A stretch of DNA of 64,000 bases from positions 141,918,001 to 141,982,000 of the forward strand of contig NC_042999.1 of the NCBI RefSeq assembly GCF_006345805.1, read 5' to 3'. Of this stretch, positions 1 through 63,069 are shown one piece after another; position 1 is the first letter of the stretch, and every line of letters starts with the position of its first letter. The notes under the pieces were generated by a model, which saw only the letters and a program-made list of their open reading frames with translations, did no database searches and was not told where the DNA came from. A program made the translations under genes and the position numbers. This DNA comes from Octopus sinensis. Taxonomy: Eukaryota.

Positions 1-702
1 GCTCCAACTCTTCGACTTGGTCGTGATCGTGCAAAGGATTTCCAAGCTGGTTCAGTCCGAGGTAAGACAAAACGCAAAAGAAAATTGGATTCCAGCTCTG
101 ATGATACACTGTTTGCTCTGTCTGTTTGCAATTCTGAATTGCAACAAAGATGTCAATCCCTCACAAATGTTGGATCTGAATCTTACCGAAAAGCAGTTCA
201 CAAATTTCTTGAAACAAAAGAAGTTATGGATTTATTAATGCTACCAGATGAAGTTTTTTCAAGTCAACCTCCTTGTGAGCCAATTCGGGGAGAAATTTAC
301 CTCATGAAAATAGATCCTTCACAGGAATCCAGTGACTGGACTAAAGATGGCTACTCTTGGTTAAGTTTAGGATCGAATGATTTAATCTTGAATCAGAGCC
401 CTGCTCTGCGTCAAAGTACTTTTCGAATGTTAGTTAATGAGATTGAAACTTGTCTGCTAAAACATGTTTATCGTTCTTTTAATAATAACCAAAAAGTTGT
501 CATTCATTATGTTACTGATGAAAGACTTAGTAACAGTAAGTCTTATCCACATTCTATGGACATCACTGGAACTTCATCAGTACCACAAACCCATTTAGGA
601 ATTACTCAGTATTACCACCAGCTAGTGGAAGATTGTAATGTTGACAGTCAGAAATCATCTGAGGCTCTCTGGGAGATGGCCCCCACCAACAAGGAGAAAT
701 CT
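1..702 (+). CDS. Coding exon (5' end outside window) encoding a basic KTKRKRK patch and a CG-1-like DNA-binding domain
   Basis: Frame 1 is open from base 1 to the GTAAGT donor at 703 (phase 0). Motif order PPxxPxxGEIYL...DWTKDGYSW...KHVY...VVIHY resembles the CAMTA CG-1 domain (P..G...RKDGYxW...R.Y.L...VLVHY). No downstream partner exon recognised before 11 kb. Confidence 0.7.
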
Positions 703-1022: not shown

Positions 1023-3038
1023 TTTGCCGTAGTCAGTACCGCTTGTGGTACCAGTGCCGGTGGCACACAAGAATCCATCCGAACGTGGCCGTAGTCAGTA
1101 CCGCATCACTGGCCATCGTGCTGTGGGCACATAACAAACACCATCCGGTCGTGGCCGTTCGCCAGCCTCATCTAGCACCTGTGTCGGTGGCACATAAAAA
1201 CACTTTCCGAAGACCCGGCAAGACTAGTCAGGCCATAAACCATGGCCCCTACCTGGGACGTAGTCAGTCCACTGTGCATACCTTCCTCCTTGTGATACTT
1301 GTGAAGGCCTGTTGAGGCAAGTGAAAATCAAATCAAAATCAAAATCAATCAAAACAAATCAAAATAGATGAACATCAATGGAATTTGTATCTTTGTGGTA
1401 CAGTGCCGGTGGCACACAAGAGAAAACCATCCGAAAGTGGCCGTAGCCAGTACCGCATCGACTGGCCTCCGTTCTGTGGGCACATGACAAACACCATCCG
1501 ATCGTGGCCGTTCGCCAGCCTCATCTGGCACCTGTGTCGGTGGCACATAAAAACACCATCCGAAGACCCGGCAAGACTAGTCAGGCCATAACCCATGGCC
1601 CCTACCTGGGACGTAGTCAGTCCACCTGTGCATACCTTCCTTCTTGTGACACTTGTGAAGACCTGTTGAGGCAAGTGAAAATCAAATCAAAACAAATCAA
1701 AATAGATGAACATCAATGGAATCTGTATCTTTGTGGTACCAGTGCCGGTGGCACACACTTTGTGGTACCAGTGCCGGTGGCACACATGAGAACCATCCAG
1801 TGCCGGTGGCACACACTTTGTGGTACCAGTGCCGGTGGCACACATGAGAACCATCCGAACGTGGCCGTAGCCAGTTCCGCATCGACCGGCCTCCGTGCTG
1901 TGGGCACGTAACAAACACCATCCGATCATGGCCGTTCGCCAGCCTCATCTGGCACCTGTGTCGGTGGCACATAAAAACACCTTCCGAAGACCCGGCAAGA
2001 CTAGTCAGTCCACTGTGCATACCTTCCTTCCTTCTTGTGACACTTGTGAAGACCGGTTGAGGCAAGTGAAAATCAAATCAAATCAAATCAAAATAGACAA
2101 AATAGATGAACATCAATGGAATTTGTATCTTGTGGTACCAGTGCCTGTGGCACACAAGAATCCATCAGTGCCGTAGTCAGTGCGGTGGGCACATGACAAA
2201 CACCATCCGATCGTGGCCGTTCGCCAGCCTCATCTAGCACCTGTGTCGGTGGCACATAAAAACACCATCCGAAGACCCGGCAAGACTAGTCAGGCCATAA
2301 CCCATGGCCCCTACCTGGGACGTAGTCAGTCCACCTGTGCATACCTTCCTTCTTGTGACACTTGTGAAGACCTGTTGAGGCAAGTGAAAATCAAAATCAA
2401 ATCAAATCAAAACAAATCAAAATAGATGAACATCAATGGAATTTGTATCTTTGTGGTACCAGTGCCGGTGGCACGTGGCACATAAGAAAACCATCCGAAC
2501 GTGGCCGTAGCCAGTACCGCATCGACTGGCCTCCGTGCTGTGGGCACGTAACAAGCACCATCCGATCGTGGCCGTTTGCCAGCCTCATCTGGCACCTGTG
2601 TCGGTGGCACATAAAAAACACCATCCGAGCGTGGCCGTCTGCCAGCTCGTCTGGCACCTGTGTCGGTGGCACATAAAAAACACCATCCGAGCGTGGCCGT
2701 CTGCCAGCCTCGTCTGGCACTGTGTCGGTGGCACATAAAAACACCATCCGAGCGTGGCCGTCTGCCAGCCTCGTCTGGCACCTGTGTCGGTGGCACATAA
2801 AAACACCATCCGAGCGTGGCCGTTTGTCAGCCTCGTCTGGCACCTGTGTCGGTGGCACATAAAATCACCCACTACACTCTCGGAGTGGTTGGCGTTAGGA
2901 AGTGCATCCAGCTGTAGAAACACTGCCAGATCTGACTGGACTGGTGCAGCTTTCGGGCTCCCCAGACCCCAGTTGAACCGTCCAACCCATGCTAGCATGG
3001 AAAGCGGACGTTAAATGATGATGATGATGATGATGATT
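1023..3038 (+). mobile_element. Non-autonomous retroposon with internally amplified tandem repeats and an RTE-type 3' tail
   Basis: Marker AATAGATGAACATCAATGG recurs at 1363, 1701, 2101 and 2421. A ~60-bp subrepeat occurs about 5 times at ~2560-2860. Ends in CCAACCCATGCTAGCATGGAAAGCGGACGTTAAA(TGA)n, the same tail as the RTE copies elsewhere in the window. Confidence 0.75.
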
Positions 3039-3314
3039 ACCTGTTTATATCAGTACATCTGCTTCTCCTGCATACATTAGCTAACACCTTTAAATCTTAG
3101 CCAACAACAACAGTAATATCAATTATCATCATTGCTACAGACATGAGCAACACTTATTAATATGACGTCAGTCCTTATCTTCATGAGAACCAGTAATAAT
3201 TGAGCCACTAGAATATTAATCTTTCTATCAAATGGTCAACTTTTCACACTTAACTCTCAACCAGTAGAAAGTTCAATACCTCAGTCTAGCACCTATTTCT
3301 ATTCATAATTCTTG

Positions 3315-3637
3315 TAAAAAGCACCATTTGAGCATGATCGTTACCTGCATCGCCTTACTGGCACTTGTGATGCTGTTGCCAGTGCCGCTGGACTGGCTCC
3401 TATGCAGGTGGCACATAAAAAGCACCATTTGAGCGTGGTCGTTGCCAGTACTGCCTGACTGGCACGTTAAAGCACCCACTACACTCTCGGAGTGGTTGGC
3501 ATTAGGAAGGGCATCCAGCTGTAGAAATTCTGCCAGATCAGATTGGAGCCTGGTGCAGCCATCTGGTTCGCCAGACCTCGGTCAAATCGTCCAACCCATG
3601 CTAGCATGGAAGTGGACGTTAAATGATAATGATGATG
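3315..3637 (+). mobile_element. Short copy of the RTE-tail retroposon family
   Basis: Same 3' block (AGCACCCACTACACTCTCGGAGTGGTTGGC...CCAACCCATGCTAGCATGG...TGATAATGATGATG). Confidence 0.7.
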
Positions 3638-3895
3638 CAATCTAATTAATAAATCATCATTACTATCATTATCACATATTTACCTTAATAATGATTGCAA
3701 AATCTTCCCTGCAAAAATTCCTGTTATCTGGAGTAGATGCCACATCTCAGTACACCTAACATATACATGGATAATATACATAACAAAGATGGGTCAGTCA
3801 TAAATAAACAATGATGTAAATATCTCAGAGGAACTCATAAAACATTATGCATTAAGTGAATGATGGAAAATCTTCGTCTTGATACACTACTAAAC

Positions 3896-5490
3896 CATCA
3901 TCATCATCATTTAACGTCAGTTTTCATGCTGGGTTGGACGGTTTGACTGAGATCTGAAGAGCCAGCAGCTGCACCAGGCACTAATCTGATCTGGCAAAGC
4001 TTCTACAGCTGGATGCCCTTCCTAACGCCAACCACTCTGAGAGTGTAGTGGGTGCTTTTTACGTGCTACCAGCACAGGAACCAGTCAAGTGGGCAACAAT
4101 CACATTCGGATAGTGCTTTTTATGTGCCACCGGCACTGGGGCCAGTCAGTGGGTACTGGCATCGGCAACATTCGGATGGTGCTTTTTACATGCCACCAGC
4201 ATGGGAGCCAGACAGGGGGCACTGGCCACAGCTATGATATTGGTTTCACTTGACCCAACAGGTCTTCTCAAGCATATCATATTGCATGACGCATCAGGGG
4301 TACTCTTAACTGAGCCGGACATGTATGGCTGCAATCTCACTTTAGTTGTCGGGTCTACACAATCACTGTATGTCTCCAAAAGTCTTGGTCTCCTGTCATT
4401 GCCTCTGTGAGGCCCAATGTTCAAAGGTCATGCTTTACCACCTCATCCCATGTCTTCCTGGGTCTACCTCTTGCAAGGGTTCCTTCCACAGTTAGGGAGT
4501 GGCACTTCCTCATGCAGCTGTCCTCATCCATATGTAACACATGACCATACCAGCACAGTCATCTCCCTGCATACCACATTTGATGCTTCTTATGCCCAAC
4601 TTTTCTCTGAGGGTGCTTACACTTTGTTGTGTATGCACATTGACATTACACATCCTGTGGATCATACTAACTTAATTTCTTTCAAGCCTACACATGTCCT
4701 CAGCAGTCACGGCCCATGTTTCACTGCCGTGTATCATGGTAGTTTGCACACATGCATCATACAGTCTACCATTCATCCTGAGCGAGAGGCCCTTAGTTGC
4801 CAGCAGAGGTAGGAGCTCCCTGAACTTTCCCCAGGCTATTCTTATTCTAGCCACTAAACTCTCAGAGCAACCACCCCCACTGCAGACTTGGTTGCCTAGG
4901 TAGTGGTAGCTATTAACTACTTCTAGTTTTTCCCACTGGCTGTGATGGAATCTGTTTTCTGTACATCTTCAGTGTTTACTGCTCCTGTGCATCTGCCACA
5001 CACAAAAACTATTTTCCCGGTTAACTTTCCTTTGATATTGCTGCACCTTTTATGTGTCCATAGCTTACACTGGATACATTGTATGGAGTTTCTACCCACA
5101 CCTTTTCTAGAGATCGAGCAGGGCCATATACCTGAAGGGGATTGTGGTTTGACAACCTTCCTACTTACTAATACTTTGGATTTTACTAGGTTGATCCTAA
5201 GGCCCTTCAATTCTAGACCTTGCTTCCACACCCTAAACTTCATCTCTAGTTTTGGCAGTTTCTCAGCTATTAGGGCAAGGTCATCAGCATAGAGAAGCTC
5301 CCAGGGGCAGTCTGTCTTGAATTCCTGTTATTGCCTGGAGGGCTATAATGAATAAGAGGGGACTGAAAACTGATCTTTGGTGAACCCCTACTTCTATTCA
5401 GAAGTCTTCACTGTACTCATTGCCAACCCTCACCTCACTGACAGCATCCCAGTACAGGGCTTGTAGAGCTCTTACCAATCACTCTATAAC
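3896..5490 (-). mobile_element. 5'-truncated RTE-clade LINE (degraded RT C-terminal part plus 3' tail)
   Basis: Minus-strand ORF fragments: KGLRINLVKSKV, CSI..KGVGRNSIQC..CKLWTHKRC, ARIRIAWGKFRELLPLL, MIHGSETW. (ATC)n tail at 3896. Confidence 0.9.
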
Positions 5491-9435: not shown

Positions 9436-11177
9436 GATGCTTGGAGGTCAGTTATTGAAGGGTTGGTGAAAGCTTCTCTACTTGTTGGATGTTTTTTTGT
9501 GAATACTCCATTTTCTACTTATGAGAACAGTAACTCATTGATGCACACGAGGCAGTGAATAAGCAAAATCATTACAGCATCAGACAAAAGGAGTGGTGGC
9601 ACTTGTTCTGGTTCATTGCATTCTGAGTTCAAAGCAGTGGATTAATAGAATTGTTAGATTTTAGGATAAAATGTTTTACAGTATTTGTTCTAGTTCTTTA
9701 CGTTCTGAGTGCCTAGGAAGGTGTGGCAAGAGGTACCATGTAAAAAAAATTTTTTTTTTAATCCAAAAGAAGGTAACAAGAAAACACCTCTATAATCCCA
9801 CAAAATTTCCATAAGCATATAACGCAAGTCAAAGAAGCCATTATTTGTTTACCGACCTCATCACGTAAGGAAGAAACTTATCTTTTAGGGAGTTACTAAG
9901 CGTTCATGCCTGCAGTATCTTGATACTGGTGCAAGAGAGAAAACAGGGCGGAGGTAAAGCATACATACACAACCCGTTTTCGGCGTAACAAAAACCCTAA
10001 CCCTAAACACCGGTGTACATATTCCTTACTTTAGCCGAAAACAGCTTTTGTAATCAAAACTGGGCGGCTTCCTTAAAAAGTTACGTTATGAAGATTGTCA
10101 GACTTGGTATATAAAGGTTTTAGATGTCTATATACTAGTTAAAAGCGACCTGGGTGTGCTGCACTTTTCAACTATATATATATGTAGCCAGCATATGTTA
10201 CATGCTGGCTACTTGAAATCTTATATAGTTTTTATCCTTGATTTTATATATATATAGTGATCATGTTCTCGTGTTTTGATGCTGTTAAGCAGAGCTAAGT
10301 TATCACATACAGACTGCTGAATGAATATGCAAGTATGCATGTTTGAGATTGATGTGAAGAAAAATCAAGTTTGCCGAGAGAGGTGTGCGATGAAGCAGAG
10401 TGACCATGTCAAAGATGTACAATTCAATAAGAAACATGCATAAAAATGGTTTTCTCTGAACTTTCAAATCAAAATTATATTTCTGTATGCTAAGTAAATT
10501 TAAATTTTAAGCGCTTTTGCAATAACTATCACTACATCATGCGGAAGGAAAAGAGCGAGAAATTGGTGTTTTCTTCCTTTTAAAAATTGCTTTTAGTATT
10601 TTCGTGTTTCACACAACGGAAGTACAATTCTGAAAGCAATATTATCGGAAATTCCGTGCCTTTTTCTTTGTCATGAAGTTAGTGAAAGCTATTCCCAAGC
10701 GCCGTCCAGTTTTTATACAAAAGGATGACATAATCAGATCCATTTGCAAATCAAATTTCCGAATTTATTTTTAAAACTTACGGCGATACGCCAAACTTAC
10801 TGTTGTGGCAAAGAATTTACTCTGAAGAGACCCAGGTAACTTTTCAATTTAGGGAGAAAATATTTCACCAAAACAAATACAACAAAACTTCTGCAAGTTG
10901 TTATTAACGACAACTGTTAGAAGAGTTCTAAACACAAATTATTCCGGAACACAGCAACCGGATGTCTAACAGAATAATAAAGACTAATAAACCTGACACA
11001 CCATCAGTTGATTCACATGCGGATGAATACAATGTTTACGCCAAATGAGTTTCCGTGTGTATTTCACATGTACTGTTAACAGACATGTCTTGTTGTGATA
11101 CCCTCTTCCTGAGAGGTACTCCATAAATTCTCAGTCCTTTCTTTCCTTTTTTTTTTTTTACTTTGCTACCCATAAAT

Positions 11178-11723
11178 ATGCAAAGACTAAATAACACGAC
11201 TGCATATAAAACGTCTTCTGGTAATAAAGTTGCGGGAGGTGAATGTAAAAGAAAAGCTATAACGCTTGAAGAGAAGCTAGATGTAATACAGCGTTTTGAA
11301 CGTAATGAAAGAACATGTGATATTGTTCGTGCAACGGGAATAAAAGAGTCTACTCTACGCACCATTAGAGACAATGCCGAAAAAATTAAAGCTAGCTATA
11401 TTGCTGGAACAAGCCTCAGTGCTTGCAAATCTGTAAGATCGCGACCAAGGGAACTTGAGGAGATGGAGCGGCTTTTATGTTTGTGGTTAGAAGATCAATC
11501 AGAAAAACTATCTGGAACAAGCTTTCTCACTATAAAAGAAAAAGCTTTATCAATTTATGAAGACCTGAAGAAGAAAGCCGAAAACCCGGCAATCGTGCCT
11601 GCTTTTAGTGCTAGTAGTGGCTGGTTTGTTGGTTTTAAGAATCGTTATACTTTTTATAATGTGAGGTGTGGTGGTGAAGTTCTTAATACACACGAGGAAC
11701 GTGCTATGACATTTCGTCCTAAG
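11178..11723 (+). CDS. Unit 1 exon 1: Tigger/pogo-derived HTH_psq + CENP-B HTH DNA-binding domain
   Basis: Intact 182 codons: KRKAITLEEKLDVI...ELEEMERLLCLWL...FSASSGWFVGFKNRY. Donor AAG|GTACTG (phase 0) lies just after the HTH; no DDE domain or TIR recognised. Confidence 0.8.
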
Positions 11724-12253
11724 GTACTGTAACACGTATTTCATTAAGACATGTAAATTAAACATTCGTTCACAAATCACTTTTTCCAATACATAATTTT
11801 TCTTTTTTTATTCTTGCACAAAATCGAGACTATTGCTTTATCTCTGTCCCAAAACCGATAAATATATAATCCTTTGTTTGTTCTTTTTATAGAAGCCAAA
11901 TTTGATCGTTATAAAAGTGTATTGCATTAATAATAATATATAATGCAGTAAGGATTTGTTACTACTGACATTATATTTTAAACCTATTTATGGTAAATAT
12001 TACCTTCTAATATCTCATAGTATTTTGACAAGTTTTCCAAAGTGGTTTATCTCTCTCTCTGTCTCTCTATTTCACCATTTCATGCATCATGCATCATGCT
12101 TTTGTGTTCGCGATACACAACACTCGCAGAGTTGATGTTAGAAAATAAAGAGAAATAACTCATCCTGGAAAAGTTGGCAATATAAAGGGATGTCTAAAAG
12201 TAACAATTTCATAGATTAATATCAAAAGTGACAACGACAATTTTTCTTTTCAG

Positions 12254-12693
12254 CCTCTAGCACACCAACAGCGTTCACCTTTGGCTATTTCTGATTTGAA
12301 TCAACCGGTGGAATTCAGTTCATCTGACCAGTTAAAAGTCAATTCTAACAACGATATACAAAAGGCTATTCAACCTTTCAACATGAATGATGTGCATCTT
12401 TCTAGTCGATCTATCATTGATATTGAACAAACTGGGAGATCTTTCGGAGTAAAACCTCGCATGAAACGGCTTCCTAAATTGAAACGCCAATTTGGATCCG
12501 GAGCTAAAGATTTATCAGTGAACAGATCTCATTTATCTCAGAGGCCATCCAACCAAATTAGATCTCATCAGCGATGGATAAAAGAATCTACTGGTAATTC
12601 TTCTGTTGGAGAGCAGCATTTTGACGTAGTTTTAAATAAAAATTCTGTAGAATACAATTCAAAAGTACCAAAAATTAACAGCAATTCAATAGC
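12254..12693 (+). CDS. Unit 1 exon 2: low-complexity basic linker
   Basis: Acceptor TTTTCTTTTCAG|CCT (phase 0), open frame PLAHQQRSPLAISD...NSIA, donor GC|GTAAGT (phase 2). Confidence 0.8.
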
Positions 12694-12940
12694 GTAAGTG
12701 TCTTAAAAACATTTTTTTTTCTTTCAAAGAGAAATCTACTTTTCGTTTTGTGTGTATAAAATGACAAATTGTTTTATCTTAATGTGTAACATTTCACTTT
12801 TATATAATACAGATGATATTTTCTGTTAGATATATAAACTATCAAATATTTTATTACATAATGTATCAATATTCAGTTTTGATGCATTTTATATTCGAAA
12901 ACATTTCGATTTCATTGATAACAATTTATTTTATTTAAAG

Positions 12941-13121
12941 TCATTCCCTGTCTGATGAAGTCGTAGTTCTTCCACAATCAACTATACCAGCTGTTCAGAA
13001 AGAGAAACGTACTTTAGTTGTACCAAATCACCAAGTAGCAGTAATGTCCAATCTATTCTCTATGTGGAAAGTTGGGCGTTTGTGTGACTCGTATATTAGT
13101 AATGGTACCACAAATGTAATG
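12941..13121 (+). CDS. Unit 1 exon 3: BTB/POZ N-terminal half
   Basis: Acceptor TTTAAAG|T completes the phase-2 codon. HSLSDEVVV...VPNHQVAVMSNLFSMWKVGRLCDSYISNGTTNVM; donor ATG|GTATGT (phase 0). Confidence 0.9.
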
Positions 13122-13861
13122 GTATGTATGTTATAATTGTTTATCCCTTTTACTCAGTATAAAATTTACATTTTACAATACTAATGAATCATTAAAGATA
13201 TATTTATAATATTGGTACAGTAAAATAAGCTGGTATAATTTAATATGTCAGAATTCTGATCTAGTTCAAAAAAGAAAGTTATGGATGTCTATGTCATTGA
13301 AATAACATGTTGACGGAAAGATCAGTAGTTCAAAATACTATCTAGTGTCTCTTAAGTCTCAATGACAATTTTCAGTTAGATGTCATTAGAAGATGCAAGT
13401 GCCACAAGTAGTAAGTATACTGTGTAATAAATAACTTGTTGTTCTGAGTCTAAATCTTCTTATTGGTAAAACATGCAAAAGAATAACATTCCTATCCAAT
13501 ACTGGAAAATATCTGTGATTTCAAATCTGAGTAAAATTGCTGCATACTTTACCTACTACTTGGGATGTTTCTCAGCCAGACAATATACACAAGTATTTAT
13601 GTGGTAGGATCTAACTGAAATTAAATTTAAGTTCCATTTCTTAAATGCTCTTCTCTCGGTTTTGTCAATATCAATGATGGATCAACTAGAAAGATGCACA
13701 TCATTCATGTTGAAAGGTTGAATAGCCTTTTGTATATTGTTGTTGACTTTTAACTGGTCAGATGAACTGAATCTTTAAAAAATGTGTGCATTGTAGAGAA
13801 TTTCAAATAGCATTTAGCAATATATAAAGCATGTTTTTACCACATTTATTTTATCTTTCAG

Positions 13862-14899
13862 GTTCATAAAATGGTTTTGGGAGCTGTGTGTCCAAAAGTA
13901 TTGCCCATTCTATATAACACCTCAAGTAGTTTGTTTCCTAAAGTGACATTTCCAAGTTCAGTCAGTAAAGAAGCACTTTTAGCATTTGCAGAATACATGT
14001 ACAGTGGTGTGTTAGATCTGAATGAAGATATTCTAGTGCAGCTGAAAACTATTGGTGAGAGATTAGATATGAAAGATTTTGAACAACTTTGTAGTAATGA
14101 ATTGAACAAAGCTAAGACTAAAGATATTTTATCAGCTGTGGTGGAACCTTTGTTGGCAGAACCTTGTTCTTTATCAGGATTACTCCCTTCCAGAACACAT
14201 GGAGACTCTAATGAGGTTCAGAACTCTATGTTAATGAAGATACTTGGAAATATTTACAGCAATAATAGCATGCAAACTGATGTTCCTGTTACCATTGCAT
14301 CAACATCTGCATCCAGTTCTTCTTCTGTTTCTGATGTAAGGTCTGCAGAAAATATGGCTACAGACCAGATTGTTGATATCAAAACTGAAGTGGAATCAGA
14401 AATAGAGCCTGCAACAAACCACAACTCTCTACAATTAAAAATGGAACCGTGTAGTCCTGGTGAAAATCAATATAGTATTCAAGAAGAATTATTCATGGAT
14501 ATTAGCAACATTACTTCCAATAATAATCTTCATCTAACACCTGGTACCAGTGCCACTTCTGGAAATATCATCAATAACCAGTATAGAAATGATCTAAATA
14601 TGGATTCCAATGATATCATCAATATATCTGATATCCCTCAATCTGAAGAGACTTGTTTATCCCAGCATACTGAAGATTGTGATAAAGATACTGATAATCA
14701 GAAAGAACTACAGTTAATTTCAGTAACATCTGCCACAGGGAATATAAGTGAAGACAGTCTCAGTAATAATTCTGATTTGATAGAGATCTCCAGTACCATA
14801 TGTACAGAACCCCCACCAACATCAAATTCTAGACCATACCCTGTAAGTTTATTTTCTGTGAATGGCAGTAAAATTCCAACTACATTACCAGATAGCTGA
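13862..14899 (+). CDS. Unit 1 terminal exon: BTB C-half plus disordered S/N/T-rich tail
   Basis: Acceptor TCTTTCAG|GTT. VHKMVLGAVCP...EALLAFAEYMYSGVLDL...LDMKDFEQLC is typical of BTB; stop TGA ends at 14899. Spliced CDS totals 2205 nt. Confidence 0.9.
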   Translation, partial: VHKMVLGAVCPKVLPILYNTSSSLFPKVTFPSSVSKEALLAFAEYMYSGVLDLNEDILVQLKTIGERLDMKDFEQLCSNELNKAKTKDILSAVVEPLLAEPCSLSGLLPSRTHGDSNEVQNSMLMKILGNIYSNNSMQTDVPVTIASTSASSSSSVSDVRSAENMATDQIVDIKTEVESEIEPATNHNSLQLKMEPCSPGENQYSIQEELFMDISNITSNNNLHLTPGTSATSGNIINNQYRNDLNMDSNDIINISDIPQSEETCLSQHTEDCDKDTDNQKELQLISVTSATGNISEDSLSNNSDLIEISSTICTEPPPTSNSRPYPVSLFSVNGSKIPTTLPDS

Positions 14900-15894
14900 A
14901 CATATTTGTTGGATCTGTTCCCGATTTAATAGGTTTGTGTTTCATTTTCTTCCAGTACTCTATTGTATTTATTAAGAGTTCTTATATAATGAGCAAGAAA
15001 TCTAACTTCATCATCTCAAAAAATTAGAAAAGTCTATTTTTTCTTTAACAAAGTAGGAAATTGTTTATTAGAAATGATTAAAAATGATATATATATGTTA
15101 GATTTGATGCATGTACATTAGATTTGGTGTAAAATTGTAACTTTTCACACTGTTAAACTTCTGTTATTATCTTAAATTTATTAATATTGATGCAGGTGTG
15201 TCTGTTCCCGCCTACATAGTTTAGAATCCAGTCCCACTGTGTGGAACCTTGGGAAAGTATCTTCTACTATAAGTCTTGGGCCAACCAAATCGTGTGAGTG
15301 GCTTTCATAGGCAGAAACTGAAAGAAGGCCCATCATGCATGTGTATGTAATATATAGTTAAGAAGTACGCTTTCCAACCAGATGATTTCAGGTTTAGTCT
15401 CAATGCATGGGACCTTGGGCAAGTGTCTTCTACTATAGCTCCAGGCCAACTGAAGCATTGTGAGTTGATTTGGGAGATAGAATTTGAAAGAAGCCTATCT
15501 TGTTTGTGTGTATTTATTTTCTAAAATCTCTCATCACTCAATGGCTTAATTTTTGTGTGTGTGTATGTTTGCATCTCCTTTTTTTTGGACATAACATGAT
15601 AGCTGTAAATAAATATCACTGTTATACAAGCAATATTCTGTGAAAACATGTCTGACCATGGGGAAAATATTACCTTGCTTGGTAACAGGTGAGGGTTGGT
15701 GACTGAAAGGGCATCCAACCATAGAAAATCTGCCTCAGTAAACTCTTTTCAACTCGTGTGAGCATGGAAAAGTGGATGTTAAAATATTGATGATTGATTG
15801 ACGATGATATGTATATACATATATGTGTATGTATGTATATCTATATAGGTATGTGTGTATATATGTATGTATTTGTATATATTATACATATATA

Positions 15895-27936: not shown

Positions 27937-28366
27937 ATGGGGCGGTTCAAGAAATACCTTAATGAAACTGAAAAGCAAGAAGCAAAAAAAGTGCGAGAAA
28001 GAGAAAGACGTGCAAATGAAACAAATGATGAGAGACTTGAAAGACTAAGAAAGCTGTCTTTCAATGCACAGAAGAGACGAGCTGAAGAAACATCAGAAGA
28101 GAGAAAACAGAGGCTTAGAAGATTGTCTCAGAATGAATTGAAAAGAAGAGCCAAAGAAACGAAAGAGGAAAGATATGAAAGACTTAGGAAACTTGCTCAA
28201 TATGCAAGGAACAGACGTGCTACTGGGTCAAAGAATCATAACACTCGACAGGGTAAAAAAATTCAAGAAGAAAAGCAAAATGCTAATGGCTACATTAAAG
28301 TCAATCTTTTAAAGTATTATGATGTCCAAGAATTCCATCATCAGGAGGAGATGCAACATAACCCTG
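27937..28366 (+). CDS. Unit 2 exon 1 (coding part): STPR-type 23-aa repeat DNA-binding domain
   Basis: Three exact 23-aa repeats ETxxERxxRLRxLxxxxxxRRAx (28018-28224), like Bombyx FMBP-1 STPR. Upstream acceptor TTTGAAG| at 27927; donor CCTG|GTATTT (phase 1). Confidence 0.8.
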
Positions 28367-29037
28367 GTATTTGTCCCTCTGAACTTTTGTTTCATTTAAG
28401 TGTGATATCTAGTTTAATTTCTGTACATATTTAAGCATTTATATGTTTGACTCTCATAACTGATGTAAATATTTTGTACAATTAGTTGCTGTCCATTGTG
28501 CTTAGATAATTTGAACTGTTGTTCATTTTAAACTAATTTGAATATTGTGATATATTATATTATTATTTTATACTTATATTCTTTTATATTATTATTGTTA
28601 TCATTTTGATTTATGTTACTGTTTACAATGTGTGTCATGTAACAACTATCAGAACCTTGTATATACTTCATTCTTCACTCAAATAGTATTTGGGTTTTGA
28701 ATGAGTCACAGCGCATGCAGGTTTCTTCTTGAGAATTTTTAACTACATCATATGATCTAAACAGCAAATGTTTTGTTTGTTAGGTTTTATCATCATTCTA
28801 CTGAGTCATTTACACCAAAGGATGTATATACCTTGCTGTCTTCTGATAGTGTTGTTTTCAAGTGATTTCCATAACTCGGCATTGTATTCCTGTTTGGATA
28901 ATTGTTCAATTATTACCTAAGTCATTTTGAAATCTCAACAATATTCTAACACATTTGCTATTTTGTCTTTCCTAACCACTTCATATTTTAAAATGATCCT
29001 AATTGAGTACTAGAGTTACTTATATTCTATTTCACAG

Positions 29038-39166: not shown

Positions 39167-40200
39167 CGGTAGGGTTCTCATGTACGAACAATTCTTTAAA
39201 CAAACATCGAATAACGAACGATTTTTCCGAAGAAAATTAAACTCGCTTAACGAGCTAAAATTTGATTAACGAAGCACGAACAGACTACGCACGCATATGT
39301 GAGTGGTAGAACGTTTACGAACGGTACGCTAAATGAATAAATTGTAGTGAATAACGAACGAATAGACTACGCACACATATAAGTAGCTGGGAAGGATATA
39401 CGAACGGTTCGTTAACGTACGCAAATTTTCATATTTCATATAGAAAATATTATTTCTCATTTTTAGCTAAAAAAAATAAAACCATGGATCGACAGAGGCG
39501 AATTAGAAAATCAATTACTATAGAAACTAAGAAAGAAATAATACATAAACATGAAAATGGAGCTAGTGTTAGCAACCTTAGTTTGGAGTACAGAGTGGCA
39601 AAATCAACTATCTGCACCATACTGAAAAACAAATGTAAATTTAAAAATGTTCGGGTAGCTAAGGGAATAACCAAGCTTAGTAAATCGCGTAACAATTTTA
39701 TTGAAGAGATGGAAAATTTACTTTTGGTATGGATTAAAGAAAAAGAAATTGCTCGTGAAAATATAAGTGAATCGATGATTTGTGTAAAAGCCAAACAATT
39801 ATTTGATGATCTTGTAGCGAATTCTCCCAGTGGAAATGATACTGTGCTGGATTTTCTTGCTTCAAAGGGTTGGTTTACCAGATTCCGGAAAAGAAATGGA
39901 TTACATAATGATGTTAAGTGTGATAAGTCTGCTAGTGCAGACCATAAAGTAGCTCGTGAGTACCACTTTTTAAACTTTATGGCTATGAGTGGCTTCGTTT
40001 CACAGCAAAATTTGAACTATGATGAAATGGGGCTTTTTTTTTTTTTTTTTTTTAATAAATTGCCGTTCAGAAGACCCTAGAGCACTTAAAATCATAAGAA
40101 CCGCCTTGGGGTTTGGACGAACCACAAATCACCAGTCATCTTTTCACTGAGTAGTTGTCTGTGGTGTTTTGTCCTACTGTGCCTAAGTACCTTAGGGACA
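39167..40200 (+). mobile_element. Truncated Tigger/pogo element (5' end plus DNA-binding ORF 39484-40080)
   Basis: AACGAAC-rich subterminal region; ORF RKSITIETKKEII...EEMENLLLVWI...FLASKGWFTRFRKR; the DETGLFWKK motif has decayed into a poly-T run. Confidence 0.75.
39484..39955 (+). CDS. Candidate alternative first exon of unit 3: Tigger-derived psq + CENP-B HTH
   Basis: ATG at 39484; consensus donor C|GTGAGT at 39956 just after the HTH, phase 1. In frame with acceptors at 41628 and 44386. Confidence 0.5.
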
Positions 40201-40789
40201 ACAATCTTCTCTCGAAGTTCTTTTGGTAATGGATAATGACTCAACTAAACCGTCTTTAATGTACTGATTGCCGGAACAGTTTAGTTTGTAAAGTGCATTT
40301 CTTGCCTGTCATCACATCTTCTGTTCTCTAGGTCATGGACCAACAGGTCTACATAGTCCGAGGTATATTTGTAAAAAATTTCATTAAAAAATAAATATTT
40401 TCTTGAAAGTTAAGACGAATTGAAGTGGACGCCGGTGAATTTTCCGAAATTCCCCACCTAAAACACTTTCCCCAAAAGTTTTGTATATTCGAAATCTACA
40501 TGATATAACTCATATTCGTAGAAAATTTCATTAAAAAATATCCATTTTTCTGAAAGTTATGATCATCCAAAGTCGGGGGGTGGGGGCAGAAATCTGTAGT
40601 TATGCCAATTTATATATGATGTTTAATATTACATTAGCTTTAAATATTAAGTGACAGTTTACCAAATTCACAGTGAAACTTTATAACACTGGAATCGTAC
40701 GTAGAATTACAAGATGAATTAATATTCACTGATATTACTGCTCTGCATCTACAAATGAAATGCTTCAGTTCATCGTAGGAGTCACTGGG

Positions 40790-41644: not shown

Positions 41645-42116
41645 ATGCCTAGGCTCAAAAAATACAAGACTGAAGCAGAGCGACGAGCGGTTACACGACA
41701 GCGTGCAAGAATCAAAAGAGCTAATGAAACACCTTTAGAGAGAGATCAAAGATTAATGAATTTGTCTTTGAATGAATGGCATCGGCGAAGAAATGAGACA
41801 TTTGAAGAGAGAAAGGAGAGACTTAAAAGGCTGTCCTTAAATGCACGAAAGAGACGGGCTAAGGAAACGGCAGAAGAGAGAGCAAATCGGCTTCGAAAAC
41901 TATCTGAGAACGTAATGAAAAGACGTGCCGGAGAATCGAGTCAGAAAAGAAACAAAAATACAAACAAGTGTGCTTCAAAGCCAAATTGCCATAACACTCA
42001 AGTGGCTAAAAGGCAGCGGGGCCGAAAGCCGACTGCTAAAGGCATTAAGATCGCTCTGACCAACTGTTATGATGACCAAGAAAAATATTACCTGGAGCAG
42101 ATGCATCAAGATCCTG
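41645..42116 (+). CDS. Unit 3 exon 1 (coding part): STPR-type repeats
   Basis: Three full 23-aa repeats (41726-41932) plus a degenerate fourth. Acceptor TTTCTTAG| at 41627; donor CCTG|GTATCT (phase 1). Confidence 0.8.
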
Positions 42117-42443: not shown

Positions 42444-43554
42444 CACACACCTCGACTTACGACCACAATAAATTTTAAAAATCGATTTTCGGACGTTGGG
42501 CAGCTGCGCGTACGATGACTGGCATCATCTAGCAACGCATGCCTCCCTCAGACCCAGGCATCCACTGCCTGCAACCGTCTCTCACTCAGTCGCTTTCAAG
42601 CATCAGTTGCGTGTGGATTTGTTACAATTGTATCTGAAATACCCCTAAAATGACTGGTAAAAGGAAAATGCTTTCATCTACAGATGCGCCAGCTAAGAAG
42701 TCAAGGAAGGCTATTGATTTAGACTGTAAAATGAAGATTATTCGGCAGTATGAAGACGGAAAGAAGGTGAATACAATAGCACATGACTTGAAGTTATCGC
42801 ATTCCACGGTATCAACAATACTTAAAGACAAAGAAAGAATTCGTGAAGCTGTGAAAAGTTCTGCACCTATGAAGTCTACAATTTTAACTAAACAACGACA
42901 AGGACCCATCCATGAAATGGAGAAATTGTTATTCATGTGGATGAAAGATTTAATACAGAAAAAAACACCCATCAGCCTTCTTACAGTGCAAACAAAGGCT
43001 AGAAGTTTGTTTCAGACTTTAAAATCACGCTCCGGATACGATTACGCACAAGATTTTCAGGCTAGTAAAGGGTGGTTTATGCGTTTTAAAAAAAGATTTG
43101 CTTTGCATAATGTACGTGTCGCAGGAAGTACAGATGAAGGAGCCCAAAAATTCGTTGATAGATTTGACGAAGGTTATCTACCAGAACAAACATTCAACGT
43201 AGACGAAACAGACTTGCTATGGAAACGAATGCCTACTCGTACGTACATACACCAAGGAAAAAAGATGCAGAATTCAATGCTTTTAAGGATAGGTTAGCTT
43301 AGTTGCTTGGTGGTAATGCCGCGGGTTCTAAGCTGAAGCCTTTTCTAATTTGTCATTCGGAAAACCCTTTAATTTTTGTTTATAGTAAAATAGAGTACAT
43401 ATGTATTTTTCATATTATGAACAATAATTATGGATTAAATTTTTGTGTTTTATATTTTTATAACCCGTTTGAATGAAAATAGTGCTGAAAAATATTATTA
43501 ATCCGACATACAACCTGCTAGTCGGAACGAAATTCGGTCGTAAGTCGAGGTGTA
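42444..43554 (+). mobile_element. Internally deleted Tigger with both TIRs, in the unit 3 intron; intact DNA-binding ORF 42650-43297
   Basis: TIRs CACCTCGACTTACGACC (~42448-42464) / GGTCGTAAGTCGAGGTG (43536-43552), TA-flanked. ORF RKAIDLDCKMKII...FQASKGWFMRFKKR...NVDET.L.WKRMP, then a frameshifted DDE start (KDRL.*LLGGNAAG.KLKP). Confidence 0.85.
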
Positions 43555-44385
43555 TATCATATTAATATATCAACTCCGAATGAAAAGTTGTCAAAATACC
43601 ATAGGAATCGTAGAAGTAACAATATGTTCATAAACTTTGCTCAATTTATGTTACATTCTAATATAAATATTGCTACTATGTTCTGATGTAATTTCATCTT
43701 TGATTCGCGGCTGGTGCTATTTGTGTCAACATTCTCGGTATGCATTCTGTCCACTACTAACGAAGGCTTGACTCTCACAGTCTCATGTTGAATGTGGCAT
43801 ACTCCTCAGGGCATAAATAGCTATAACTCTACATTGGATTACGATTCATTGGCAACAGCTTCACTTGCTTTGGAAAATTCAATGAAATTTCCAATTGTTA
43901 TGAATTATAATATCCTATCATTAATTCCTTTCAATAATAGTAAATAATAGATTGAAATATAGATATCTTAATTTGTATTGATTACAAAAATGAGGCATAG
44001 TATCGAATGACGTTGATAGAAGGCTACTACCTTTACCTAATATAAAAACGTTGAACAGCCGTGATTAACGGATTAGACGGCGAGTAGAATGAAGTTTGAA
44101 TAAAAGACCTCTTTGAACTGGTTCATGATACAAATATACATATAAATTCTTAATTTTGATAATGATAAAATGAACGTTGTTGGTTTGGGGAAATAGCAGT
44201 GAAGATGAGCTATATTAATTTTGAGCTTATAGATACAATATATTACACTTTAAAAACAAAATTTACACTAAAATGGGAAATGTGAAGTTTGTGAAAATAG
44301 AGTAATATTTCAAAATACTTGTTTGTTGTTTTCAGTCAGAATAATGTTTATTTGGATGTAACTTGTAACTTTGATGTTTTGACAG

Positions 44386-54732: not shown

Positions 54733-55228
54733 ATGGCAAGGCCGAGAAAATACAAGACTGAAGCAGAAAAACGAGAAGCCAGGCGACAGCGTGAACGAAT
54801 CAAAAGAGCTAATGAAACACCTTTAGAGAGAGATCATAGACTGATGAAATTATCTTTGAATGAATGGAAACGGCGACGAAGTGAAACTGTTGAACAGAGA
54901 AGTGAGAGACTTAAAAGGCTGTCCTTAAATGCACGGAAGAGACGGGCTAAGGAAACGGCAGAAGAGAGAGCAAATCGGCTTCGAAAACTGTCTGAGAGCG
55001 AAATGAGGAGGCGTGCCAGAGAAACGTCTGAAGAAAGAAAGAGAAGACTTAAGAAACTCGCCGAATATGCAAAGAACAAGCGTACTTCCGAGTCAAATTG
55101 TCCTAATACACAAGTGGCTAAAATGGCGCGAGGCCGAAAGCAGACTGCTAATGGCATTAAGATCACCCTGACCAACTGTTACGATGACCAAGAAAACCAT
55201 TACCTGGAGGAGATGCATCACGATCCTG
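54733..55228 (+). CDS. Unit 4 exon 1 (coding part): AT-hook-like RPRK plus four STPR repeats
   Basis: Four exact 23-aa repeats at 54814-55089; donor CCTG|GTATCT (phase 1); close paralog of 41645-42116. Confidence 0.85.
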
Positions 55229-59892: not shown

Positions 59893-60269
59893 TATTGTTG
59901 CATTTAGGGATGGTCGTGTTGCCAATTTAGCCAATAAAAACACACACACTATATATTTGGTGTTCACTTGCTTCAGCTTTATTTTATATAAATTTTATTT
60001 AGGCCAGAGTTCTTTCGTCACACTTCTGTGACCTCATCAGTGGTCCTTTACTTTCTTCTTTCTTTTCCGTGTGTCTCTCCTTACTAATGATCTGCCATTT
60101 TGTATTCCAATAGGTCACAGAGGTGTGAGGTCACAGAAGTGTGATGAAAGAACTCTGGCCGAAATACAATTCATATAAAATAAAGCTGAAGCAAGTGAAG
60201 ACCAAATATATTGTGCGTGTGTTTTTATTGGCTAAACTGGCAACATGACCATCCCCAAATACAACAATA
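59893..60269. repeat. Inverted repeat (arms ~144 bp, ~90-bp spacer) with a hammerhead-like motif
   Basis: Left arm 59893-60036 is the reverse complement of right arm 60126-60269. Confidence 0.9.
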
Positions 60270-63069
60270 AATATACATAGATACATACATACATATATAT
60301 ATATATACATACATATATATTATATTTAATAATAATTTTATAAAAAATTAAGTAAAATGTACGGTTACTCACCAATAATGAATGATATTGATTTAAGACG
60401 ATGATGAAAATAATGAGGGTAATGACTGCACAGCAAAGAAGATTTAAAGCTCTTCAGATGTTTTAGGGGATGTCGTATCTTCATGCAAGGCTTTTTTGGT
60501 GATCTTGAGGAACATTGTGGTGGGAAGTTGCTGTCGTTTCTTCTTGGTGGTGAGGAGAATTTTATATGTCTGCAATCCTGGCATTTTTAAATTGGAGAGA
60601 CCGAACCATATAGGGATCCCATGCTCCTGCTTTCCCTTGGAATTCCTTTGCTGTCCTTAAAAGATCAGACAGACATTTGATTGTCAGGCTCACCCCATCT
60701 CCCCCTTCCTCTGGATCTGGTGCTTCCTCCTCCTCTTTGCTGGCAGACATTAACTCCAACAAATCTTCATCTATCAGGGTTTCAGAGTAGGCATCAATGA
60801 GGTCCTTGACCTCATCTTGTGTAATGTCAAAACCTTCACCACCAAGTACCTTTGCCAGTTTCCTCTCATTGTTGAAAGCCTCATGCTGAATATCTGCAGG
60901 TGAGAAGCCCCCGTAGTCCTGGACACACTCTGGCCATACCTTCTTCCAGCATGCGATGAGGGTTTCTTTTGTCATTTCTTTAAGAGCAGCGTGGATGACT
61001 GACAGGCACATTGTGTTCGTGAACTTCTCATCCAAATCCATTGCATCCACAGTGTTGGAGAGTGTGTAGAATGCATGGATCATCCCTTGATCTGTAGGCT
61101 GGATGAAGGAGGTGGTATTGGCAGGGAAGATCTCAACTTGAACTTCCTTGTGGTTCAAATCCAAAGAGTGACCACCAGCAACACCTTGAGTTCCATGCAA
61201 ACATTTTGGAAGTATACTTTGGCTTGAGGGATGAAGTATTGGTGGAAGCAATTCAAAGTTAGACCTTTGGTAATCCAGGCCTTGGGGTTGCGCATCCAGT
61301 GGACAGGCAGCAGATTTTTATTCTTATTTTTGAAGGCCCTCAGGTTCATGGATTTGTAGATAAGTCCTGGTTTCATCATGAAGCCAGCAGCATTGCCACA
61401 CGTAATTAGCATCACTTTGTCCTTCTGTGCCTTAAACGCTGGGGCTCTGGCTTCATCCTTCATGATCTATGTTCTGGAAAGCATCTTCTTCGAGAACAAG
61501 CCAGTCTTGTCCATACTAAAAACCTGTTCCAGCTTGTATCCCTTGTCCTCAATAATCTACCTGAAAGTCTCAAGGTACTTCTCGGTGACTTTTTTGTCAG
61601 CTGATGCTGTCTCTCCATGCAGAGAAACACACTTTATTTTAAACCATTTCTGGAAACGGTCAAACCATTCCTTGCTGGTTTGAAAATCTTTGGGCTCCAA
61701 TGTTGTCAGTGATCTTGGTTGCGGTTTTTTGGTGCCCTCTGCTCTGTCTCCTCTGTGAAACTGCTGGTATAATTTCTGCACTTTCTTGTGGGTGATGTTA
61801 CCACTCAAGGAGATGTTTTTCTTCTTGCAGTCAATGATCCACAATACTAAGGCAGATTCCTTCCTGACAAAGCGCTTATTTCTCACTATCGTTATCTTTT
61901 TGGCACTTTCACTGAAACTTACTGCTATGGTAGTCCTGATCACCACCTTGTTCTTCTTTATTTAGCGTATGATGCTTTCATTGACAGCATAATAACGACC
62001 TACTGCAGCATAACTTTTACCTTCCTGGAACATGTCCAGCAGTTGTACCTTCTCATGGAGCGTCATAACAGCTTTCTGGTGCTTAGATTCACTGCCAGAA
62101 GTCTTAGAAGGTGTAGGGCATTTTGGGCAGCATCTTAGGGCTTTAATAACATGCTGCAAAAAATGCAGTACTCAGCAAAATACTGGAGATAACTTGATGC
62201 AGTTTTTCCAAAAAAAGAAACCTACAGAAAAATCTTCTTTGCATCTAATATGCACAAACCACAAATGGGAGATTGAGCAGAGATTAAAAATAATCATGGT
62301 TTTGAAAAATTTAGTTTGTATTACCACTAGATACAGTAATCTATAATATAATAATAAGAGAGAGTGAGTGAGTGAGAGAGGGGGGAGGGAGGGAGGGACC
62401 AGTAAGTGACCTAATTTCAATGATGCTATATTGGCTCATGACCTTAAAAATTATTCTGTTGAAATAAATATTGTGTATGATCAAATGTAGTAATGATTTA
62501 AAAAAATACACTAATAGTTGCTATACTAATTAGCAAGCTTTGAAGGAAAGCAGGAATAAGAGATACAAGATACAGTGTACTCGTATCTAAAAAAAAATCA
62601 AGCGACATAATGCATGGCTATTCTAATCAAAGGTATCTTCAGCTGTGAAGGGGCATCCAATAAACTGACAAATATGGTATCTTATTATTAATAGTTTAGC
62701 CTTAAAAAGTGTGGAAAAGTATATATTGGCACAAAAAATGCCATAAAAAATCACGGATGATATTTATGATTCCGCAAATAACCGGGCCCACAAATTTGAG
62801 AAAAATGCTCATGAATTTATTCCTCAACCAACTATTTGGTTGGAACAAATGTTCTTAGAGTTGAATGCCCTTATAGTTGAACACCCATACAAGAAGTAAG
62901 AATGGAACCCTTTTGTCAGTCAAGCAAACAGAAGCAAATGGTGATGTGTGCATTGTCCAGAGATCTTTAACAAACGCTTTGTATTGTTTGAATTTATTAA
63001 TGGGTATACTTAATGTTACTGTTGACTGTTATCTAACTAGTTATGTGTTTTATGTTTTTGTATTTGAAG

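Follow-up and report, generated by a model that had tools for sequence, protein, structure and literature searches.

Introduction

How does part of a transposase come to stand at the head of a host gene, and is it used there? The question is raised by a stretch of 64,000 nucleotides (nt) of the Octopus sinensis genome (contig NC_042999.1, positions 141,918,001 to 141,982,000 of the forward strand; hereafter the window, from whose first letter all positions are counted). In it an open reading frame (ORF) for the helix-turn-helix (HTH) DNA-binding part of a Tigger transposase lies within a gene, LOC115209549, that encodes a BTB-domain protein and is referred to below as gene A. The answer that is considered very probable is that a Tigger DNA-binding exon, termed HTH1, was captured by a coleoid BTB gene as an alternative head and is spliced into an HTH-linker-BTB protein that is under selection. 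The evidence for this is the structure of the exon and its product, its similarity to living transposons and its conservation between species, and the alternatives are weighed as the evidence that bears on each of them is given.

The HTH exon and its predicted product

The HTH form of gene A is made up of four exons, of which all but the first are shared with another form of the gene:

11178..11723, plus strand: Tigger-derived alternative 5' coding exon (HTH1), with the transposase's ATG, CENP-B_N and HTH_Tnp_Tc5 domains, and donor AAG/GTACTG
11724..12253, plus strand: intron 1, 530 nt, without recognisable transposase remnant
12254..12693, plus strand: linker exon 2, shared; the THAP/CG-1 and the HTH 5' ends each enter it in phase 0
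12941..13121, plus strand: common exon 3, start of the BTB domain
13862..14899, plus strand: common exon 4, remainder of the BTB domain, Ser/acidic tail, C-terminal PYPVSLF motif and stop codon

HTH1 is 546 nt long and consists of 182 uninterrupted codons from the ATG at 11178, ending in phase 0; by our own estimate the chance of 182 stop-free codons in DNA of 34% GC is about 1e-6. Comparison of its protein with Pfam placed CENP-B_N at residues 24-72 (36-39 bits, cut-off 21.2) and HTH_Tnp_Tc5 at residues 94-158 (29-33 bits, cut-off 22.2), and the exon can be aligned to residues 4-129 of 1HLV, the structure of the DNA-binding part of human CENP-B. Between the second Pfam match and the donor there are 24 residues, and the donor precedes any DDE residue. 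A first-pass annotation of the window, made from the letters alone, had described a clean HTH ORF that stops at a donor soon after the HTH, which is what was found, and had typed the domain as psq plus CENP-B. The CENP-B part of that assignment stands on the two Pfam matches, whereas the psq part does not, HTH_psq giving no match to the HTH1 protein at E<=1 in Pfam.

Splicing of the four exons at GT-AG sites yields a stop-free HTH-linker-BTB ORF of 734 amino acids (aa), so that the frame does run on into the linker and BTB exons as had been claimed; the span to which the fusion had been assigned, 11178-12693, takes in HTH1, the linker exon and the intron between them, but the BTB exons lie downstream of it. 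The linker exon (12254-12693) has no Pfam match. A BTB/POZ domain was found at residues 371-472 of the 734 (32.9 bits, cut-off 20.5), and the order of domains is HTH (residues 24-158) followed by BTB. The BTB is of the long dimerising type; its best matches in the PDB (gigaxonin, ZBTB17/NAC1, ZBTB9 and PLZF) are all weak, at E of about 1e-4 to 1e-2, and in sequence comparison with PDB entries it is about as distant from the BTBs of Cul3 adaptors as from those of the ZBTB type. Over its full length the 734-aa model is 100% identical to XP_036357331.1, isoform X2 of LOC115209549 in the O. sinensis RefSeq annotation, and isoform X2 is also annotated in O. bimaculoides (XP_052822519.1, LOC106872000, 736 aa), whose protein falls in the same 90% cluster. 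The junction of HTH1 with the linker, 11723^12254, is inferred from these two RefSeq models, and the frame, the phase and the GT-AG sites all fit it.

The older 5' end of gene A

Gene A also has a second product (P0002/P0055/P0054, 873-875 aa), in which a THAP domain and a CG-1-like region replace the HTH and which enters the linker exon at 12254. Its last private exon opens the window:

1..702, plus strand: last private 5' coding exon of the THAP/CG-1 isoform of gene A, located by tblastn of P0002 at 100% identity; ends AAATCT/gtaagt, phase 0

This exon encodes residues 88-321 of the 875-aa THAP/CG-1 isoform, and the THAP domain itself, at residues 5-91 of P0002, is encoded by an exon upstream of the window. 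HTH1 therefore sits inside an intron of 11.5 kb in a THAP-BTB gene, at 530 bp before the common acceptor, and is one of two alternative, mutually exclusive 5' coding ends of gene A, the two isoforms differing only in their DNA-binding head. A double-headed THAP plus HTH protein is ruled out by an in-frame TAA at 11124-11126 and by the sole upstream AG (11133-11134), which is out of frame. Because the frame is blocked upstream in this way the HTH isoform must be translated from its own ATG, and it probably has either a transcription start of its own or a leader that is non-coding. The THAP/CG-1-BTB form is present in the gene in the window, in O. bimaculoides and in cuttlefish (P0012, P0013), and since it is also found in cuttlefish it is taken to predate the Tigger exon of gene A.

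The 875-aa P0002 shows one further peculiarity, an extra intron within exon 4 running from ~14757 (...CTCA/gtaata) to ~14862, with which the frame shifts and an unrelated tail replaces PYPVSLF. This intron is unused in the O. sinensis and O. bimaculoides models and is probably an annotation difference.

Transposon origin of HTH1

Residues 5-178 of the HTH1 protein are 73% identical to an intact 604-aa Tigger transposase of the shark Chiloscyllium that bears a DDE_1 domain. The similarity is also apparent in the DNA, where it amounts to 78% nt identity and is confined to a stretch that opens 23 nt before the shared ATG and closes 5 nt short of the donor (window 11155-11718 against 2978-3538 of the shark sequence, L006). 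Only transposase residues ~1-178 are kept. The donor lies ~25 residues ahead of the first catalytic Asp motif of the transposase, and its GT aligns with the GT of the Val codon in the shark motif PMVKK.

It had been claimed that neither a DDE remnant nor a terminal inverted repeat (TIR) could be recognised at HTH1, and more sensitive comparisons bear this out. A tblastn search with the C-terminal parts of three Tigger transposases found no DDE remnant in 11700-13900, which covers introns 1-3 of gene A (best E=0.6). The ends of the Tigger were defined from an alignment of the two closest copies, both from shark. The 5' end matched the 100 nt upstream of the HTH1 ATG no better than it matched random tiles of the window, and the putative shark 3' TIR had no match at <=2 mismatches in the window or in two O. 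bimaculoides loci; both are weak negatives, the shark copies being diverged and having no clean TIR pair. The rest of the element at gene A is deleted or decayed past recognition.

Close relatives of this Tigger family were also found in Trichuris, monotremes, marsupials and lamprey, and dS (synonymous divergence) between octopus HTH1 and the shark copies is only 0.73-0.81. Such similarity is too high for vertical descent since the split of protostomes and deuterostomes, which argues for horizontal movement of the family among distant animals.

Selection on the captured exon

Against the O. bimaculoides locus (L005) HTH1 is 97.6% identical in nt with 0 indels, and the 10 synonymous and 3 non-synonymous differences correspond to a ratio of non-synonymous to synonymous change (dN/dS) of 0.08. 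Only 3 of the 182 residues differ, all of them outside residues 24-160, so the core DNA-binding domain is 100% identical. In the same comparison exons 2-4 of gene A have a dN/dS of 0.097 and the introns are ~95% identical with indels. A third, more distant species, represented by Logan contigs (L001/L002), is 96.2% identical to HTH1 in nt, again with 0 indels, the 13 synonymous and 8 non-synonymous differences giving a dN/dS of 0.16 (one-sided binomial p=9e-5). The flanks of HTH1 in that species are 85% identical with many indels, and donor and acceptor are conserved. The linker exon 2 has a dN/dS of 0.12. Purifying selection acts on HTH1 as strongly as on the BTB exons.

The first-pass annotation had proposed a completed host-transposase fusion, which it set against an exon as diverged and broken in related species as neutral Tigger copies; the opposite of such decay was found, with dN/dS of 0.08 and 0.16 and 0 indels. 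Its fusion is upheld in that an exonised domain has lost the catalytic part and ends of its transposon, appears in RefSeq models and is selected, and has to be amended in that HTH1 is an alternative 5' end of gene A and not the sole one.

Spliced head or separate gene

A number of caveats must be applied to the reading of HTH1 as a spliced head of gene A. No transcript-derived protein spanning the junction of exons 1 and 2 was found in the protein database, and a search with the junction peptide returned only a genomic ORF (P0038), this being a weak negative because the word index missed P0001 itself. The donor AAG/GTACTG is only moderately strong, and two codons past it there is a conserved TAA, with which an unspliced HTH-only product of 184 aa is also possible. 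No conserved promoter mark was found upstream of HTH1, where the 95% identity to O. bimaculoides is at the level of the introns. The dN/dS values of 0.08 and 0.16 rest on few substitutions (13 and 21), and the tree in which the Tigger domains were grouped is a neighbour-joining tree without bootstrap. Finally, a search of ~150 kb of octopus DNA turned up neither a parental Tigger copy nor a TIR.

The TAA is the starting point of the strongest alternative, in which HTH1 is a stand-alone domesticated HTH-only gene, 184 aa long, ending ...RPKVL* and nested in the intron, with RefSeq isoform X2 a modelling artefact. HTH1 has its own ATG, the TAA is conserved in all three species, the 184-aa ORF is the one reported by gene callers on the Logan contigs, a junction-spanning transcript protein was not found, and two further species have a related HTH-only ORF. 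These last ORFs cut both ways, however, in that they too stop exactly at a consensus GTAAGT donor. The spliced isoform is modelled by RefSeq in two species, and the donor, the acceptor and their phase-0 compatibility are all conserved. Gene C, a paralogue described below, repeats the architecture twice, in phase 1 and fitting its own common exon, and one of its HTH isoforms was already present in the 2015 annotation of O. bimaculoides. A separate HTH-only gene is thus considered unlikely, and the capture of HTH1 as a head of gene A is preferred.

Tandem paralogues and further captures

Gene A is not alone in the window, which holds four tandem paralogues of its BTB family (genes A-D), all on the plus strand:

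Gene A, LOC115209549, plus strand: heads THAP/CG-1 or Tigger HTH1
Gene B, LOC115209332, plus strand: STPR exon 27937-28368; common exons to 35503
Gene C, LOC115209617, plus strand: three alternative 5' exons (HTH3, STPR, HTH2), all phase 1, fitting the common exon at 44382
39484..39955, plus strand: HTH3, gene C alternative 5' exon (isoform X3), phase 1, donor GTGAGT
41645..42116, plus strand: STPR alternative 5' exon of gene C (isoform X2), homologous to the STPR exons 27937-28368 and 54733-55227
42650..43238, plus strand: HTH2, gene C alternative 5' exon (isoform X1), keeps the first DDE motif, FNVDET
Gene D, LOC115209550, plus strand: STPR exon 54733-55227; last exon beyond the window

Genes B, C and D occupy 27937-63274. 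Comparison within the window found no STPR exon in gene A and no HTH exon in genes B and D. The Tigger similarity of HTH3 continues past its donor, with weak DDE remnants at 40128-40487, and in HTH2 a DDE remnant runs on into the intron (43231-43368); these exons of gene C, with DDE vestiges past their donors, illustrate the route of capture. Against O. bimaculoides dN/dS is 0.18 for HTH3, 0.48 for the STPR exon and 0.43 for HTH2, the last with in-frame indels, and among the three HTH exons HTH1 is under the strongest constraint and is also the tidiest.

The three HTH exons all occupy an equivalent place, as alternative 5' exons ahead of the linker exon in tandem paralogues, and this might be explained by a single ancient capture, in which the family ancestor acquired one Tigger HTH exon of which the three in the window are diverged duplicates. 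Their sequences point the other way. The HTH exons are only 31-39% identical to one another, compared with 63-77% for the BTB parts of the paralogues. Identity to shark transposases is 82-84% in the core of HTH1, HTH2 reaches 56% with a skate Tigger, and HTH3 is <=38% identical to any sequence compared; HTH1 and HTH2 fall in different transposase groupings of the neighbour-joining tree without bootstrap. Their splice phases differ, 0 as against 1, and the distribution of heads, with gene A lacking an STPR exon and genes B and D lacking HTH exons, also argues against one inherited exon. A single capture is accordingly judged highly improbable. Because the HTH identities are low relative to those of the BTB parts, and each exon is nearest to different transposases, HTH1, HTH2 and HTH3 are read from their sequences as three independent Tigger captures.

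The window also contains a Tigger that was not captured:

60736..62108, minus strand: decayed antisense Tigger of a different family, in an intron of LOC115209550 (gene D); neutral contrast

It had been described as broken and is so, its largest ORF having 229 aa and its similarity being split over two high-scoring segment pairs. That HTH1 is itself a neutral intronic relic of this kind, its frame open by chance and swept into a gene model without any function, is suggested by its intronic location in a transposon-rich genome with another Tigger in an intron 50 kb away, but is scarcely credible given a dN/dS of 0.08-0.16, 546 nt without an indel in three species while the flanks gain them, a core domain 100% identical between O. 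vulgaris/sinensis and O. bimaculoides, and the broken state of the truly neutral copy.

Outside the window a neighbouring paralogue, LOC115209547 in O. sinensis and LOC106872006 in O. bimaculoides (P0019, P0020), is annotated with an HTH plus DDE_3 cassette of the IS630/Tc1 type. In both species the cassette sits between the THAP or CG-1 head and the BTB.

A coleoid BTB family

A HMMER scan of 1.84 billion representative proteins found 46 clusters related to exon 4 at E<=1e-3. The ten representatives that were checked by name, and also the named matches from a protein search, are all from coleoids (Octopus, Argonauta and Acanthosepion). The hallmarks of the family are the common linker, the BTB, the tail and a C-terminal PYP(V/I)SLF motif, and gene A fits them. 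The heads vary, and among the 46 clusters Pfam recognised THAP in 6, CENP-B_N/Tc5 in 3, STPR and CG-1 in 2 each, and DDE_3, FLYWCH, DUF3504 and ZSWIM3_N/FAR1 in 1 each; several of these head types are transposon-derived domains.

In the gene A protein two psi-K-x-E motifs (the SUMOylation consensus) occur at residues 563-566 (IKTE) and 584-587 (LKME), and PYPVSLF is at residues 714-720. By reading of the sequences both kinds of motif recur in the paralogues, and similar ones were noted in other members of the family that were read, those of cuttlefish included. As short linear motifs they may have an effector or regulatory role.

Proposed mechanism and function

The events at gene A probably ran as follows. 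A Tigger transposon, of the pogo type, inserted ahead of the linker exon, in the 11.5-kb intron that follows the THAP/CG-1 5' exons. Its 5' part persisted as a self-initiating exon with a complete bipartite DNA-binding domain while the remainder was lost, and the GT of a transposase Val codon came to serve as splice donor, phase-0 joining to the linker giving the 734-aa protein. The HTH isoform is expected to bind DNA sequence-specifically, and through the BTB it may form homodimers or pair with the THAP isoform, and perhaps also with paralogues. The HTH head would then take the effector activity of the family to a second set of sites, beyond the reach of the THAP head, and such sites may plausibly have arisen from the ends of Tigger copies of the parental family. 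The first-pass annotation had likewise suggested that the fusion may bind the TIRs of its parent family and bring BTB co-repressors to them; going by its sequence the BTB may recruit co-repressors or Cul3.

A wider reading, which is offered as doubtful speculation, is that the coleoid BTB family acts as a lasting "exon trap" in which DNA-binding domains of transposons are caught, and that its isoforms and paralogues dimerise into a combinatorial recogniser of the ends of the source transposons and silence or otherwise exploit them. Tigger domains have entered the family three times in the window, and THAP, Tc1/mariner, FLYWCH, FAR1/ZSWIM and DUF3504 domains are found elsewhere in it. If true, it would make the family a cephalopod counterpart of vertebrate KRAB-based surveillance, made from the transposons' own DNA-binding domains.

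The HTH-only ORF in further species was found on Logan contigs of AT-rich species (ERR12370324/21, ERR3431203); it belongs to the same Tigger family and is 66% identical in aa to HTH1. It ends exactly at a conserved ACC/GTAAGT donor. Between two species the ORF is 97.5% identical without an indel, as against 94% with many indels in the orthologous flanks. At 2.3 kb upstream there is another HTH ORF of the pogo type, which ends at GTAATA. These ORFs (L003 3484-3954 and 620-1147; L004; L009 1922-2392) may represent the same exon-trap architecture in another lineage.

The pre-mRNA of gene A has a further feature that might bear on such a system:

13652..13772, minus strand: inverted copy of exon-2 bases 12313-12439, within intron 3, near-perfect, 121-127 nt

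The duplex of exon 2 with intron 3 has a predicted energy of -188.6 kcal/mol, compared with a mean of -33 for shuffled sequences, and -193 kcal/mol in O. bimaculoides. Long exon-intron duplexes are classic substrates of ADAR editing, which is very extensive in coleoids, and this 120-bp duplex might add ADAR recoding to the exon-trap system. The intronic arm shows no excess conservation in comparison with O. bimaculoides (95.0% identity; elsewhere in the intron it is 94-97%).

Relation to known systems

Host-transposase fusion genes, of which KRABINER is an example, were reportedly traced by Cosby et al. in Science in 2021 to capture of transposases by alternative splicing. To our knowledge systematic documentation of this process is confined to tetrapods, for which it is established (summarised in PMC12062965). 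Gene A resembles the tetrapod fusions in that a transposase DNA-binding domain is kept, the catalytic domain is lost and the former is, in the RefSeq models, spliced to a regulatory or interaction domain of the host, and also in the retention of the original host isoform and the purifying selection on the fusion. It differs from them in having a cephalopod host and in its partner, which is a lineage-specific BTB family and not KRAB or SCAN; moreover, the transposon part of gene A gives the 5' end and the start codon, and captures have occurred at least three times in the cluster, from different Tigger families.

A BTB and a pogo-related HTH also occur together in a transcription-factor-like protein in the arthropod BTB-psq factors Pipsqueak, Bric-a-brac and Ribbon, said to have been treated by Siegmund and Lehmann in 2002. 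In those factors the BTB is N-terminal and a short psq C-terminal, whereas gene A has its HTH ahead of the BTB and carries the bipartite CENP-B-type domain in full, with no HTH_psq match. Because HTH1 is 78% identical in nt to a living Tigger family, the fusion in gene A is clearly of separate and recent origin.

The Drosophila loci lola and mod(mdg4) are BTB genes that choose among many DNA-binding exons, some of which (FLYWCH) come from transposons. They share with gene A a constant BTB module to which interchangeable DNA-binding modules are joined by alternative splicing. The polarity differs, in that lola and mod(mdg4) have the constant BTB 5' of the variable exons and gene A has it 3' of them. 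The 2-3 variants per gene in the annotations seen for the octopus cluster are also far below the number in the Drosophila loci.

Whole domesticated pogo/Tigger transposases are known as CENP-B, TIGD1-7 and JRK/JRKL (PMC4231638, PMC7386202). Their DNA-binding domain is of the same type as that of HTH1 and comes from the same transposon superfamily, but they keep the DDE-derived domain and are stand-alone genes, whereas HTH1 holds only the first 182 residues and is an exon of another gene. From an autonomous pogo/Tigger transposon the HTH1 locus differs in being without a detectable DDE_1 domain or TIRs.

The closest precedent is a study by Mukherjee and Moroz (2023), which states that most CENPB-type and THAP-type factors of Octopus are associated with BTB/POZ (PMC10027918). 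Its supplementary table has LOC106872008 under "CENPB BTB/poz" and the gene A orthologue, LOC106872000, under "THAP BTB", and these catalogued proteins belong to the same gene family as gene A. In the text available the treatment is one of domain co-occurrence only, and the BTB is described as transposon-derived. Relative to that portion of the study, additional points are the Tigger isoform of gene A, the use of alternative 5' exons, the arrangement of the paralogues in tandem, the independence of the captures and the evidence of selection. The class, Octopus CENPB-BTB and THAP-BTB, is thus already catalogued and the gene model already annotated, and gene A is a good invertebrate case of a known route to new regulators.

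The interest of the locus is that it shows the route of transposase capture in a mollusc, with the ancestral isoform still present and purifying selection measurable on the captured exon. Next to it are two captures, younger or less tidy, that retain DDE vestiges, so that stages of domestication can be compared inside 64 kb. The recurrent acceptor of these transposon DNA-binding domains is a small BTB family restricted to cephalopods, which bears on the origin of lineage-specific regulators in coleoids, with their transposon-rich and rearranged genomes.

Other repeats in the window

In the gene D intron, beside the decayed Tigger and TA/TG microsatellites, there is a 144-nt inverted repeat (59893-60036 and 60126-60269) whose arms are 92% complementary and enclose an 89-nt loop. 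It is an element of the foldback type or one resembling a miniature inverted-repeat transposable element. Dispersed short repeats were found just 3' of gene A (15230-15327 and 15396-15493) and in its large intron (2649-4273). They are repeats like short interspersed elements or other interspersed repeats, and have many matches of 72-91% across the O. bimaculoides locus (L005).

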